DNA of 63,422 bases, the filler included, from Olpidium bornovanus S191 (Eukaryota; Fungi; Olpidiomycota), in NCBI GenBank assembly GCA_017911155.1. It is 29 parts of 29 records of this genome, joined end to end, with 100 filler letters (N's around TTAATTAATTAA, not from the genome) between each part and the next. Parts side by side here need not be neighbours in the genome. Positions count along the whole stretch, not along the records: positions 35,420 to 36,524 come from JAEFCI010001670.1; 28 more parts are not named here. One strand, 5' to 3'. Numbering within the stretch: position 1 is the stretch's first letter; the number at the start of each line of letters is the position of its first letter. Below are positions 7,008 through 38,698 of this stretch, piece by piece. The translations under genes and the position numbers were made by a program. Under the pieces are notes generated by a model. That model had not been told where the DNA came from and did not search any database. It worked only from the letters and a program-made list of their open reading frames with translations.

Positions 7008-8091
7008 CATGGTTCAAACGGCAAAGTCTCCCCCGAAATCACCTTTCGCCTCTCGCGAACTATAATCTCCTCTAACTCTTGGTCATCCGCTAATCGGGGA
7101 TCATCCCTATCGACGATTGGCGAGATTTAGCGTGCTACAAGAAATAGCATTCTATAGATGAGGTCCCGCCGATGACCAACCTCCGAATTTCTCTGCCGAC
7201 GGCTGACGGCAAGTAATACTCGTCGCGCTTTCCGCTGTGCTTGTTAGGCGAATTCGCCAAGTAGTCGAAGTACACTGGATTTTCGATAACGAAGTCTGGT
7301 TCGCCAGCTTCCGGCGCACTGCTTCAGTCGGAGTACATGTCGTGGTGGACAGTGAGGCTCGCGTGCCACACTCACGGCTGTCGGAAGAGGGGGGAGATAG
7401 CGCCGCCTAGCATGCGACCAACCTCTGCCGTTTCTTCTCAGCTTCTTTTAGCGCAGCCATCTTCATTTGAGCGGCCAGCAACTTTTCTGCCGTTTTGGCA
7501 AGGTTGTTCACCTGTCCAGTGCGCCGCTTTCGTCTTTCCACCTTCAATGACAAAGAGGCCGTGCCCGCAAAAAAAGACAAGGCTGTGGTGAATTTTCCAA
7601 TAATCGTCCGCGAGGGCGGTAGAGGTAGGGATCCGCTACGCACCATTGTCTGCCTTTTGAGCTCCGGAACGCCGCCGTCGAACACAAACACGGGCTTCAC
7701 GTTGAAGAAGAGCAGTTTGCATATTCGCCGGAAAAACCCCAGGGTGTGTGCGTTCTGGAGCGCGTTCCCCTCCTTGTCCCTCATGGCCTTCAGGAATTGG
7801 TGGAGCCATATGCTGGCGTCGACGGCCAGCCGCGTCCCGGCCAGCGACTCGAGCTTCACCTTACGGGCCACCGGAGACACCAGATCCCAGAGGCCCTGCG
7901 CACACCCAGGAGATGTGAGAGGGTTGTGCCGCGCAGGGGCCGCAGACGAGACCACCGAGATCTCGTCGAACTCCCGCTGCCGCCGGCCAACATTCAGAGT
8001 ACCACCTGGCGGCCCCGTCTTTCAAATGCTAGCACGACCTCGACGCGGAGCGGAGGAGTTTCCGCGCACGTCGACTCACCTTGACACCCAT
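7008..8091 (-). CDS. RAD2: XPG/Rad2 structure-specific endonuclease, N-terminal part
   Basis: Exon 8080-8091 (MGVK) joins 7644-7895: GLWDLVSPVARKVKLESLAGTRLAVDASIWLHQFLKAMRDKEG...FFRRICKLLFFNVKPVFVFDGGVPELKRQT, the XPG-N domain. Later exons include DDPRLADDQELEE. Confidence 0.95.
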
Positions 8092-8978
8092 TTGTGGCTG
8101 TCTTGCGGATCTGTGTTCGACTAATGCCGCTCGAAATGGGGTATGTTTGTGCGCCGGGCAGTGCTTTCCATGGCCCGGAAATTCTCCGGATCTGCGATGG
8201 AATTGTGCCCTGTTTCCTTACCGGCTGGGCCGTCCGGCCAAACCCCGCGCGGCGCACCTCGTCAGTGCCGCCTGCGGGCTCCGAGCAAACAAAGCGACGC
8301 GCCGAAGACGACGGCGTGGACGGCGACGGTGACCAGCGCGTTTACCGCTCCTATTCTCCCCACACAGGAGAGATCAGCTACGTTTGCGAGTGCGGGGCCC
8401 GGTGCGGACGGCCCAGCTTCCAGTGTGGTCAAGTGGTAAAGCAGTTGAATCGATATTGCACAAAACAACGTCTCTAGCTAAAATGCGATCTATATCCGCC
8501 CTCGTTGGTGTCACCACCGTTCGGTCGCTGCCACTGCTTTTCAGCAGCCGTATGCCAGCAGCACAGCTTTTACGCTGTCAACAGACTGCCTCCATTCTGA
8601 TCACGTTTGGCACTCCGTTATGACTGGATTTTGCGGGAAAACGGTGCTTTCCGCAAGTGCTGCGGGATCACCGGCTGTCGCTATCATGACGGCCATTGGA
8701 TATCTGGCGATGTGCGTTGATTTCAACGAGAATTGTTTGGCGAGGCCAGAGCTGAAAAGTTTATATTATTGCCAGCGTCCCTTGCGCAACAGTAATTTGC
8801 CCGTCNNNNNNNNNNNNNNNNNNNNNNNNNNNNNNNNNNNNNNNNNNNNTTAATTAATTAANNNNNNNNNNNNNNNNNNNNNNNNNNNNNNNNNNNNNNN
8901 NNNNNCCGTTTCCCGCTTTTTTTTTTTTTTTTTTTGGCTGATTTTGTAACAAATATTTGACTTTATTCCTCCGTCAAG

Positions 8979-11074
8979 ACGTGCCTCCAACGGAGCCCTT
9001 AAACTACTCAGCGATCGCTCGCACCGCCCCTTTCTCGAGAGCCGACATCGACCTCGGCATCAAGGACATAGCCCTTGGGATGTTCCGTGTCCTGCAAGAA
9101 AAGGGATCGGCCGTGTTCCCGGTCCCCGGCATCGGCAGAATCATTTTCCGGCAGGGCCAGGCGCGGCTGAGATACGATCTCGCGTTTTGCGCTGCAATGA
9201 ACGGCTTGCCGCCGGAATGCGCACGCGGGTACAGGCCTACGACTGCCCGCCCCGTTTGCTGCCATAGCAGGGTGCAACCTGGGTGATTTCTGAATTCCTG
9301 CTGCTGATACTTTTCGCCATCTCGCCACAAATTTCTAGCGTCGAATCTCCGGATGACCTCAAGAAGCCGGTCGTGCTGAACCATCCTGCCGGCAGGCTGA
9401 CTAGAGACGAAGGCGTCACCCTCCATCCGGACATCAACTGGCACTTGTCAGAAAGCCAGAACTGGACACAGCCTGTCCAGTTAGCGGCCGACAGCCAGAG
9501 CTGGGCCCAACTTGTCCCGTTAGCGGCCAACAACAGCAGCTGTCCTCCCCTGGATGTAATCCTGGTGGAACCCTCGCAGAGGAAGGACAGGGCTGATGGC
9601 TCCTCGGTCGACGAGACGGGAGACCCGAAGCCTATGCCGCGGGCAACTGAGGATTTCGGCAGCGGCGGCGTCGCTCCCAGGGGTCAGCGCGCGGAATCCG
9701 CGGATTCCCTTCTGAGGCGCCTGAAGCGGACCATTCTCGCCTCGGAGGTCAGCTTGCCGGTCATCCAGGCGGAAGTCGAACATGCAAGGAAGAAAGCGGC
9801 GGTGACAAGGCCGCGGCCGTCGAATCCCATCAAACCTCCAGGTAAGGTTTTTGTGCGTACGTCAGTGAGACAAGAAAAGCCAAGGCGTCTTTGCGGGCGC
9901 AACGGTTTTTGTGCGCGGATGCGGGATGCTCATCCGTTGGCCGGCCTGGACGTCTGGTTTCGGGAACGGGCTATGTTCCGCATTTCCAGACGGCACGCAT
10001 CTGCACAGCAATTCCGGAAACCGGTTGTGGAGAGACGGCAGGTGTCCGCTGTGCTGGGCCAAGGCAAAACAGTTCAATGATATCCGGGAGGACGAAAGAA
10101 TGAAAGAGAAAGATTTCGACAAAATGATCATAAGGCTTTCCATGGAGATAGACCGCCAGCTGGCCTTAAAGGAAAAGGTTCGCTTTGAGTATGCCGGGCG
10201 AAACGTGCCGTTAGGGAGTGGAGAGAGGGGGGCAGTTGGTTCCGCTGACATCGATGTTGGAGAACAGGCTGCAAAGGAAGATAGAGCAAAGAACTGCGTT
10301 GAAATCGCACAGTACAATTGGAAAACTATCCTGAATAAGGTTTGCCGTTGGATGGTCGGCTCCCTGCGTTACCTTACGCTGCAAGGGCTTATGATCCCGG
10401 CCATTCAGGAAGAACAAAAGAAAGCGGCTGCAAAGGCGTCGCGAGAAGAGAAAATCAAGTATACGAAGCCCCAGACGCGGCCGCGAGAGTGGGACCAGCG
10501 ATTTGCTGAAGACCTTAAGAAGCAGGTACTGACCAGTCGAAATGAAACATTCAAGGAAACCGCGCCGCTGACATTTCGTCTTCAGATCGAATCCCAAAGA
10601 CAAAAGGCGCGCGCGGATCGTAGAGCCTCAGAGCTAGAGGTTAAGCTGTCGAACCAGCAGGCCACAAAATTGTAAGACCAGCAAAAACGAAATGGACGGG
10701 CGCTTTCCGGGCTCCCCGTTTACTCTGCCGGCGTTTCCTTTTTTGCCGTCAATTATAAAAGGCTGGAAGAGGCCAAAAACAGAGAACGCCTCGATGACCT
10801 TCACCGGAAGCAGCTTCAACACGCGGCCCTGCGTTGGAAAATCCGGACCCAGAAAGAGCGCGAGGAGCGGGATCGGCGTGTCGACGACATCCCCTTCGAG
10901 AATGTGTTTGTCGCGGCCGACAGTGGCAGGAATGGGCCCATCGCCGAAACGGCCAAGCAACTTTTAAACGAGCAAATACGCGTTCTTAACATGACGCGCG
11001 AAAACGCGAAGCAGGAGAAAGAGCATCAGCTCCTCGTCTCGAAAAATTTGCTTGAGACCACGAAGAAGGAGTAA
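8979..11074 (+). CDS. CCDC81: Coiled-coil domain-containing protein 81 homolog (5' truncated)
   Basis: HU-like domain VPPTEPLNYSAIARTAPFSRADIDLGIKDIALGMFRVL...PGIGRIIF...LRYDLAFCAAMNG, a HLHSNSGNRLW...CPLCWAKA motif, then coiled-coil exons ending at TAA 11072-11074. Confidence 0.8.
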
Positions 11075-35419: not shown

Positions 35420-36076
35420 CATGAGCTGGAGCACCGGAATCTCCAGAGGGAAGTTGAAGGTCGTAATGAGGACCGCGGGGCCGTACGGCCAGCGAAGGCC
35501 CTGGGACCGCTGGCCTAGGTGATTGCCTGGTACGTTGAAGCCCCTGGCGCAGAAACGCACATTGTCGCCGCAGAAGTTCTCCAAGAAGTTAAGGGTGACC
35601 CGGACCTCGGACATAGCCTGGTCGTAGCTCTTGGGACAACACCGTTGTACGGTGCGGGCAAAAAAATCGAGCACCTACAAAACAGAGGAAAGCACATGAG
35701 GTTTCCAAGGAGAAAGCTTGTATTTCGCGAGAAAAAGATCGCAGCGCCCTCGTTGAAGACGAGTAACCCCCATACCTCAGGCTTGCGCATTTCTATGACG
35801 AGCTTCGTAGTTACGTCGCCCCAGAAGACATAGCGTTCCGGTTTCTTGAAAGGATTGTGCAGGCCCGACTTGGGACACAAATTGAGGCTCTTGACCCATG
35901 GGGCCAGCTCATCCTCTTTTAAGAGGGGAAAGTAGCAAAGCGCCTCGCCGTTCAAAGGATCTGGGATGATGAGAGACGTCTCTTTGCTGGCAGGCTGCCA
36001 CTTCCCGCCGAGGAGCGAATGGATCTGGAACACGTCCTTGCCGGACTGTGCTTTGGGGTCGTAGGTCGCCCACGGA
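35420..36076 (-). CDS. ALDH12A1: ALDH12-family (plant-type P5C/glutamate-semialdehyde dehydrogenase) fragment
   Basis: PWATYDP...IPDPLNGE...CPKSGLHNPFKKPERYVFWGDV...KPE | VLDFFARTVQRCCPKSYDQAMSEVRVTLNFLENFCGDNVRFCARGFNVPGNHLGQRSQGLRWPYGPAVLITTFNFPLEIPVLQLM. These motifs are diagnostic of ALDH12. Intron at 35675-35775. Confidence 0.9.
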
Positions 36077-38698
36077 CTACGGGACGGCGGGAGAATCGCC
36101 GGTTGAGCGACAGCGGGTCAGCTTGAGGGGAAAAAGGAAGACACCCGACGAAAAAACCAACGAACAGGCCCGAAGAAGTTGCTCCGGCGTCACACTAACA
36201 CAAAAAGTTCGCGCCACAGCCTGGGACCGGAAGGGCGGGCTCCCGCGTTCCGCTTTCGTCCGCAGCTCGCGACAAAAGCGTGAACCGCGTTATTCCGCGC
36301 CCCCCGTGGGAGCGCGGCGGGGAGGGCAGGTTTTATCGCGCTGCCAAAAACGCGCCGTGTTCCGCCGTTTTTCCGGCGTGGTACTCACATGGATGGCGGC
36401 ATCACTCTCGTTCGGGCGCGGCTAAGTGGCGGGAAATGATGTTTCCGGGCGGGGGGCGGCGGAAGGCGGCGCGGGGGCAGGGAAATTTTTTTTTCTTTTT
36501 TTTTTTTTTTTTTTTTTGTCGGAGNNNNNNNNNNNNNNNNNNNNNNNNNNNNNNNNNNNNNNNNNNNNTTAATTAATTAANNNNNNNNNNNNNNNNNNNN
36601 NNNNNNNNNNNNNNNNNNNNNNNNCCAGCGCGCGTCGCGCGCGGAAGATTACACGTCAACGGAGCGCTTTTACTTCGCACGAACGCGCGGACGTCTCCGC
36701 GCATCTTCGATTGCAAATCGACGTAGGTATATAAATAATAACATGAGATGCGGCAAGAAGGGCCCACGGCCGGGCTTTATGTAAAGAAAAAACTATCCTT
36801 CGATTGGCCGGAGGCCTTTTCATTATGGATACCTACGGAGATACCTACCCATTGCGCGCGAAAGTATTCCCCAGTCCATTGGCGCGATGCGGTTACTTTC
36901 TTGGAAGTCTTGCCCATGCGGATGATCAGGCAATATGCTTCTCCGCCGCCTGCCGCTAGACATAGAGAATAGAGTGGCCATGACCGACGCGTGACTAGGA
37001 TTAGGCTTTGGGTTTTTAACCGCCGGGGCGCAGATGCGAAGTTCATCTTTCCGTTTGTTGTGTTCCCGCGTGTGTCCGTGCGCGCGCGCGTGTGTGTCGG
37101 GTGTGTGTGTTTGAGGGCGGTGTGGAAGCTGCAAATGGGGAAAGAGCGAAAATGTAAAAGAGCATTTTTTTAGGCCGGCGTAGACGCAAAAAAGGGCCGG
37201 GAAACCCGTTGCAGTGCGGTGGGGGTGCTCTGCGCAGCAATAAAAGTCCCTTCTCTCTCGCTCGGCCCCGAGTCGCGTCGACAACGATAAACGGCTGTCG
37301 TTTTGCGCGCGTTTTGAGCCGCCGAGAAATCCCGAAAAAATGCGCGCGTCGCAATGCCCACTGTTCGTTCCTCTTTTTTCCATTCATTTTTTTTCTCTCT
37401 CTTCTTTTTTTAGGTTGTTGCTTCTCTGCTTTTATTCCCCTTCTTCCTTCTACCCCGTCCCCCCTCCTTCTCAAACTCCTCCGTATTCTCCTCCTCGTCT
37501 TTCTCCTGCTGGTTCTGGCGCGTGACAGCCGCTTGTGGGGGGGGGTCCTCCGAGGGGCGTTCAGGCCTGCTTCCGCTTCGGGTTCTGCGGAGACTCTTTC
37601 CACATCTTCGCGACCCTGCGGGGTCGGGGCGAGTTCGCGTCTGTCAGTTCAACAAGGTTCGAGGCGCGGCAGACGGAAAACAGTTCGTTTCGTTTCCCCC
37701 GGGGTCGCGAACGCTTACGCGGCAAACGCATCGCTGTGCTTTATGCTTGGATGGGAAGCTTTGTACGCCGGCAGTTGTTCCTGCAAGGAAGCACAAGCTG
37801 TGAGACCTCCGGCGGCTTGCGGAAGGGGCGAGGTGGGGGGGGGGGGGGGGGGGGCAAAAGGCNNNNNNNNNNNNNNNNNNNNNNNNNNNNNNNNNNNNNN
37901 NNNNNNTTAATTAATTAANNNNNNNNNNNNNNNNNNNNNNNNNNNNNNNNNNNNNNNNNNNNCATGCCAACCAAGAACATCGACTTAATGCCATATGTTC
38001 GAGGTTTAAATTCGTGAATGGCAACTTTGAACATCCGCTTAAACAAATGTCCGGATTTGCGGGAAGGGCACCTTTTTGCGACACGAGAAATTACTCGCGA
38101 CCAAGGGCACATAGCGCAAAGTCAAAAAAAGAAAATCGCTGACGCGAACGCACGCACAAACAACTTTGCTCCCGCCGTTGTCAGACTGCGCCGGCATCCT
38201 CGCCACGCCTTGGAATGGCGGCGGGCAAGTTCATCTACTGCCGCCCATTCCCCGGGCGCCATCGCCGCTCTCGAGAGAGGGTGAAAGGCGGTCGGAGAAA
38301 GGAGGGCACTCATCCCTTTACGGATGCGGCGGCTTCGCGTCATCAGCCAACGTGAAAGGTGTGTCTAATTTGAAGAAAAAAGACTGGTGACTGACTATAG
38401 AAAAGATCCTAAAAAGTACAGTCGATGGGGAACGGGAAAGTTCGGGCGGACGCTGGCCTCTATTTATACCCCGCCCCCCCCTCCCCCCGGCCTTCTGTCG
38501 AAGTCGCCCCCCCATCCCTCTCCGCTCTCCCCCGGGAGGAATTTGTTTTGGTTTGCGTCGCTTCCGGTGGTGCTTTTGTCAGTTTACTTCGTGGCCTACC
38601 AAAGGGGCAAACTGCGCAATCCGCAGAAAGAAAAATGGAGAAGGGTGCGGCGGCGGGCGGCGAAGAGGGGAGGGGAGGGTTGCTTCGAATCTTGACAT

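Follow-up and report, generated by a model that had tools for sequence, protein, structure and literature searches.

The last step of proline catabolism is divided in textbooks between two families of aldehyde dehydrogenases (ALDHs), ALDH4 in animals, fungi and many bacteria, and ALDH12 in plants. ALDH12 is listed as plant-only in PMC7823795; PMC10888605, citing Korasick et al. 2019, gives bacteria, heterokonts, plants and animals as carriers of the family. A literature search found no paper linking ALDH12 to early-diverging fungi. In the window (the whole stretch of DNA analyzed, 63,422 nucleotides with filler included, labelled Olpidium bornovanus S191), a first-pass annotation had placed a plant- or protist-type ALDH12, the enzyme that oxidizes pyrroline-5-carboxylate (P5C), at positions 35420–36076. 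The features of the contig piece concerned are as follows:

35420–36524: contig piece JAEFCI010001670.1, about 1.1 kb, with one gene, on the minus strand
36486–36517: T tract of 32 nt on the plus strand, an A tract with one interruption on the strand of the gene
36389–36473, minus strand: exon 1; the X3 and X4 transcript contigs start at 36473, with 36389 spliced to 36076
36403–36473, minus strand: 5' UTR within exon 1, followed by the start codon (36402–36400), with 14 coding bases in the exon
36077–36388, minus strand: intron 1, 312 nt, GTGAGT...CCCGTAG; joint 36076/36389 in X3 and X4
35776–36076, minus strand: exon 2, 301 nt, present in spliced contigs from three runs
35675–35775, minus strand: intron 2, 101 nt, phase 0, GTATGG...TTTTGTAG; absent from the X1, X3 and X4 contigs
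35420–35674, minus strand: exon 3, incomplete at the contig edge, with translation VLDFFARTVQRCCPKSYDQAMSEVRVTLNFLENFCGDNVRFCARGFNVPGNHLGQRSQGLRWPYGPAVLITTFNFPLEIPVLQLM

The coding part of exon 1 specifies M-P-P-S and two bases of an Ile codon that is completed by position 36076, and the predicted protein reads M-P-P-S-I across the exon 1/2 junction and then PWATYDP. No ATG precedes the one at 36402 in the transcript, and none lies in frame upstream of it within the piece; the closely related protein P0270, described below, starts at the equivalent place (MSIPSWATFDP). Exon 2 (translated from 36075 to 35776) reads PWATYDPKAQ...CPKSGLHNPFKKPERYVFWGDVTTKLVIEMRKPE, with CPKSGLHNPFKKPERY inside it and EMRKPE at its end, and encodes the N-terminal arm and the first part of the ALDH12 protein. 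Exon 3 reads, in order, VLDFFART...FLENFCGDNVRF...PGNHLGQRSQGLRWPYGP...FNFPLEIPVLQLM, and FNFPLEIPVLQL is also encoded in it (35674–35420). The four motifs quoted earlier as signatures of the family are all encoded on the minus strand, CPKSGLHNPFKKPERY by exon 2 and FLENFCGDNVRF, PGNHLGQRSQGLRWPYGP and FNFPLEIPVLQL by exon 3; the range given with them covered exons 2 and 3, and missed exon 1 (36473–36389) and the 312-nt intron 1. The piece is the 5' third of an expressed nuclear gene, with three exons and about 190 codons. The T tract lies just upstream of the mapped 5' end of the transcripts (36473) and is probably low-complexity sequence of the promoter region. No record matched the 172-aa genomic ORF at 35518–36033 exactly, and an Rfam scan gave a chance-level match only. 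A plus-strand ORF at 36048–36425, antisense over intron 1 and without support, was rejected as spurious.

Expression and splicing were analyzed with Logan contigs from runs X1, X3 and X4, which come from three independent studies with one shared organism label and were aligned to the piece. The contigs had lengths of 1651, 1723 and 2304 nt. Intron 2 was exactly skipped in all three, and intron 1 (36388–36077) was also skipped in those of X3 and X4; both introns are of the GT..AG type, their joints appearing as CT..AC on the plus strand. The GT-AG intron that had been predicted from the genomic sequence (35775–35675) was thereby confirmed by the transcripts. Run X1 used an alternative donor of intron 1 after 36200 (GTTAGT; joint 36076/36200), which retains 189 nt (36388–36200). 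The reading frame of this isoform meets a stop directly after MPPSM, and the product is probably unproductive (or regulatory). Transcript contigs and window differed at only 2–3 bases: a single codon, with changes at 35920 and 35922, encodes Leu (TTA) in the window and Val (GTT) in X1, X3 and X4, and 36435 shows A>G in the X3 and X4 contigs. Such differences fit an assembly and RNA data derived from different strains or alleles of the same species.

Assignment to a family was based on searches of solved structures with phmmer. Exon 3 matched maize ALDH12 (PDB 6d97_A, residues 126–210) at E 1.2e-38, and exon 2 matched the same chain (residues 29–118) at E 1.2e-14. The next-best chains, which were succinate-semialdehyde dehydrogenases, PutA and other ALDHs, appeared at E 0.085–0.25, and PutA, at E 0.14 with exon 3, was the one exception to the lack of any ALDH4 chain at E ≤1 among solved structures. 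Because only the ALDH12 chain matched well, all others lying at E ≥0.085, the fragment is by sequence an ALDH12 and not an ALDH4/Put2, in agreement with the initial family call. Scores with general profiles lay below the cut-offs: Pfam Aldedh (PF00171), present in all full-length relatives, gave 22.2 bits on exon 3 over profile positions 71–147, slightly short of the cut-off of 23, which accords with the fragment being only 85 residues long, NCBIfam gave weak generic ALDH matches of 10–20 bits against cut-offs of 450–1750, and TIGR01237 and TIGR01238 reached 11–14 bits on the fragment against cut-offs of 485–660. Under the ALDH nomenclature, members of a family share at least 40% sequence identity with established members. 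Identity to angiosperm ALDH12 was 40–46% for exon 2 and 71–75% for exon 3, placing both exons within that rule and bearing out the divergence from land plants that had been remarked upon, and in the trees described below the window exons fell inside the set of ALDH12 sequences. The positions of the catalytic Cys and of the general-base Glu fall downstream of the contig edge (35420). The transcript contigs of X1, X3 and X4 extend 1.0–1.5 kb past this edge, and transcripts of 1.65–2.3 kb are long enough to encode some 526 aa. From the intact sister protein P0270, the conservation of the fragment and the length of the transcripts, we infer that the enzyme is catalytically competent.

The positions of the introns were compared with those of other ALDH12 genes. 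The Marchantia gene has a phase 0 intron between K123 and L124 that aligns exactly with intron 2 of the window gene, located between ...RKPE and VLDFF.... The chance of a coincidence is about 1 in 100 if some 17 introns are distributed over about 1,635 Marchantia coding positions, the number of introns being an estimate (12 exon segments were mapped). Ectocarpus and a genomic relative of the window gene (L001) have no intron at this site. The shared position and phase suggest that intron 2 is old among eukaryotes, and make it unlikely that the gene arose recently from a bacterium or through cDNA. In a separate observation, an exon begins at the RYL(L/A)YG motif in both Marchantia and Ectocarpus, whereas no intron lies there in the window gene; thus, intron loss and gain differ between lineages.

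To place the gene among its relatives, the exons were searched and entered in trees as separate rows, and identities are given exon by exon. An exhaustive search of representative proteins with exon 3 returned 410 proteins at E ≤0.001, many of them fragments; well-covered matches did not exceed 72% identity, and short partial ones reached 81%. The closest protein, P0270 (526 aa, from a Logan transcript of SRR27165748), was found with a profile made of the two exon rows and protein P0051, and is 68% (exon 2) and 81% (exon 3) identical to the window. P0270 aligned with 6d97_A end to end at E 1.9e-221, no other solved chain falling below 1e-20, and it retains the catalytic-region motifs LEDAGFDWK and GQKCSAQS. 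A further near relative is P0402 (SRR27165743). A search with P0270 returned P0337, from another run (SRR10376311), at 85% identity, and then a group of proteins at 62–66% that, going by their source labels, includes those of Amoebidium parasiticum (Ichthyosporea), Pygsuia biforma (Breviatea), Stygiella incarcerata (Jakobida) and Trimastix/Paratrimastix (Preaxostyla). Plants, green algae, oomycetes, Ectocarpus and Tribonema followed at 58–63%. A protein-atlas search yielded clusters of ALDHs whose taxa were uninformative, and the full-length protein of the source organism itself was absent among the matches listed for the two profiles with exon rows and for P0270. No named fungal ALDH12 appeared among the best 120 matches in each of three lists (the two profiles with exon rows and the P0270 search), lists that were length-filtered and that exclude only full-length annotated fungal members with an identity to P0270 of roughly 61% or higher. 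The assumption that ALDH12 is missing from annotated fungi is uncontradicted, since no named fungal member was present among the best 120 of any of the three lists.

Several observations on these relatives stand apart from the placement of the gene. The transcripts of P0270 carry a CT-rich 5' leader of about 100 nt (TCTCTCTCTCCCTCTCC...), and their GC3 is 0.57, versus 0.73–0.78 in the window exons. P0051 is encoded at 763–2046 of L001 (SRR30664515), a GC-rich genomic sequence read through an intron right after FNFSLE; its N-terminus (MTSPAIPPWATLDP) also has no presequence, and it clusters apart from the window, with an MMETSP sequence. Two plant models at the top of the score lists, P0151 (Artemisia annua, 833 aa) and P0152 (Quercus suber, 653 aa), are over-long and are probably fused or tandem gene models.

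A maximum-likelihood tree of 41 rows (LG+C20+F+G4), with exons 2 and 3 of the window as separate rows, grouped both exons with P0270 and P0337 in one clade with support of 100/100 and a long branch of its own. Its sister was a 10-row clade containing Paratrimastix, Stygiella, Pygsuia, Amoebidium and unlabelled sequences, and the joint 14-row clade had support of 100/98. Land plants (100/98), chlorophytes (99/96), oomycetes (100/99) and ochrophytes (100/98) formed separate clades, and a quick tree of 57 rows gave the same picture. The broad eukaryotic phylogeny that had been proposed as a check on the first-pass annotation showed that the gene lies outside plants, green algae and stramenopiles. 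The label "plant/protist-type" was accordingly right as to ALDH12 and too narrow as to distribution: the 100/98 clade holds Amoebidium and Pygsuia, and bacteria also carry the family.

The tree bears directly on whether the sequence came from a plant, either as contamination by the host or because a root parasite recently acquired it from its host plant. Plants are where ALDH12 is best known, and in exon 3 identity to the angiosperm counterparts is 71–75%; exon 2 is 40–46% identical to plant sequences, however, against 68% to P0270, the land plants occupy their own 100/98 clade, and the presequence of plant ALDH12 is missing. When the window clade was forced together with land plants the arrangement was rejected (delta lnL 63.7, p-AU 0.0012). 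Host-plant contamination and recent plant transfer were thus excluded by the tree and the AU test, and we regard an origin of this kind as having almost no likelihood. The earlier argument against simple host-root contamination, made from divergence, holds with this test (p 0.0012), which equally removes transfer from the host plant from the three origins that had been proposed; of these, ancient retention fits best, and a protist contig is unlikely. The window gene is, judged by its sequence, a new and diverged member of ALDH12 within a protist-type subclade free of presequences.

Amoebidium, a holozoan, and Pygsuia, a breviate, belong to Obazoa and are relatives of fungi and animals, and the retention of an old gene is consistent with the data because relatives occur in Holozoa and Breviatea. 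A single-gene tree is compatible both with vertical descent and with an old transfer between eukaryotes. The gene could be native now and yet have been acquired horizontally, with a non-plant eukaryote or, further back, a bacterium as the donor, instead of having been present in the opisthokont ancestor. The mixture of Preaxostyla, Jakobida, Breviatea and Ichthyosporea in the 14-row clade hints at some transfer, one bacterial sequence is nested close to Colponema, and the three lists of best 120 matches contain no named fungal ALDH12. Such an acquisition is nevertheless improbable given the two spliceosomal introns, one of them common to Marchantia in position and phase, the position of the window clade as sister to the labelled protists and not nested within them, and its at least three diverged members, with GC3 of 0.57–0.78, which indicate an established lineage.

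The bacterial sequence is that of P0408/P0363, an ALDH12 of 528 aa encoded at 8001–9587 on bacterial-looking contigs of 18–36 kb (L007–L009) with dense genes, where its neighbors are the exonuclease VII large subunit and a WYL-domain (WYL/RNase T) gene. It nests among eukaryotic ALDH12 in the 41-row tree, next to Colponema, and because of this nesting ALDH12 can be said to move between domains. Also nearby are another Aldedh gene and one for cytochrome b5. Marine metagenome contigs of 3.6–32 kb (L026–L048) gave many uninterrupted matches to exon 2, at 38–42% identity, and ALDH12-like genes seem to be common in marine, probably bacterial, genomes.

N-terminal extensions, taken as the residues before the conserved WAT/FAT-DP motif, were tabulated across the relatives. 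In annotated plant, green-algal, oomycete and Ectocarpus proteins they comprised 24–47 residues with 2–7 Arg/Lys and almost no acidic residues. In the 14-row clade of the window, 9 of the 11 full-length sequences had 5–14 residues, of which 0–2 were basic, the exceptions being P0338 (22 residues) and P0345 (44). The window protein has only MPPSIP, six residues and none basic, ahead of WATYDP, and a plant-type presequence is not seen in it; such a mitochondrial presequence is a mark of the location of the plant proteins and not of the ALDH12 family itself. The enzyme would appear to lack a cleavable mitochondrial presequence and, unlike plant ALDH12, is probably cytosolic or imported without a cleavable signal.

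The occurrence of the gene in sequencing runs was assessed by the presence of sampled words. Eleven runs, drawn from four or more studies with the same label, contained 36–62% of the words, approximately the exonic share of the piece, at depths of 14–95. By contrast, none of 9.7 million reads from a raw deep RNA run with the same species label (X24) fell on the stretch, and the share of sampled words in a DNA-type run with this label (X20) was only 6%. The gene may be silent or thinly covered in these runs; alternatively, its source may be missing from some samples of the label. Small shares of the words were present in soil metagenomes. When 241 million metagenome records were scanned with exon 2, relatives did not exceed 52% identity, except for short matches of 29–45 residues at 59–62%.

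These data can be read as indicating that contig and transcripts belong to a heterotrophic protist, a different eukaryote present alongside the labelled organism in cultures or samples. In line with this, the contig is very short and isolated, the labelled members of the sister clade are all protists, X24 has no read at all and X20 has 6% of the words, and soil metagenomes hold small shares of them. An occasional contaminant, however, would not produce near-identical spliced transcripts in 11 runs of at least four studies at depths of 14–95, and no relative above 52% was found in the 241 million records, the short matches at 59–62% apart. With no close metagenome relative, the source does not belong to the common free-living organisms of the environments in that collection. 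A protist associate thus strikes us as unlikely, with somewhat more in its favor than an acquisition by transfer. Were the contig a contaminant, it would be a useful flag on the assembly, and ALDH12 would then say nothing on the labelled organism.

Taken together, we consider it likely that the locus is an expressed, native ALDH12-type gene of an old, vertically retained eukaryotic lineage, with a predicted role in the conversion of P5C to glutamate. The product would be a P5C dehydrogenase of the ALDH12 type, acting at the last step of proline breakdown and converting to glutamate the P5C/GSAL supplied by proline dehydrogenase and ornithine aminotransferase. The gene would most likely be native to the sequenced organism and descend vertically from an old eukaryotic ALDH12, which would have been lost, or replaced by ALDH4, in well-studied (Dikarya) fungi and in animals. 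Against a native gene count the 1.1-kb contig, on which there are no neighboring genes to tie it to the host genome, the zero reads of X24 and the 6% of words in X20, and the unlabelled state of the nearest relatives, P0270 and P0337. The narrower proposal that the source is a true early-diverging fungus with the first fungal ALDH12, vertically retained, free of a presequence and probably cytosolic, is put forward tentatively, as possible and short of an even chance. If the owner is fungal, the opisthokont history of the enzyme would be one of differential loss and not of a clean split between kingdoms. Retention in fungi would mean that ALDH12 and ALDH4 coexisted in the opisthokont ancestor and were then differentially lost, and that some fungi finish proline catabolism outside the mitochondrial matrix.

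Compared with known systems, the window gene belongs to the same family as plant ALDH12, represented by maize ZmALDH12 (PDB 6D97) and Arabidopsis ALDH12A1/P5CDH. Its exons align to residues 29–118 and 126–210 of 6d97_A with no notable gaps, and by analogy the same reaction would be expected, glutamate semialdehyde + NAD+ to glutamate. The plant enzymes differ by their mitochondrial presequence and separate clade, and exon 2 of the window is only 40–46% identical to them. With the Marchantia gene the window gene has one intron position in common, and it has fewer introns in the region. ALDH4 (human ALDH4A1, yeast Put2) and the ALDH domain of bacterial PutA act at the same step of proline catabolism and have the same ALDH superfamily fold, but they form a different family with no significant sequence match to the window (PutA and generic ALDHs at E ~0.1). 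The P5C dehydrogenases of Stygiella incarcerata (P0342), Paratrimastix pyriformis (P0346), Pygsuia biforma (P0341) and Amoebidium parasiticum (P0339) lie in the same 100/98 subclade as the window gene, measure 524–533 aa and have the same short N-terminus, a few residues before WAT/FAT-DP; P0346, P0341 and P0339 are 49–54% (exon 2) and 65–69% (exon 3) identical to the window, Stygiella P0342 being absent from this ranking. Together with these Amoebidium, Pygsuia, jakobid and Preaxostyla relatives, the window gene defines a distinct, presequence-free branch of ALDH12 in heterotrophic eukaryotes near the fungal–animal stem.
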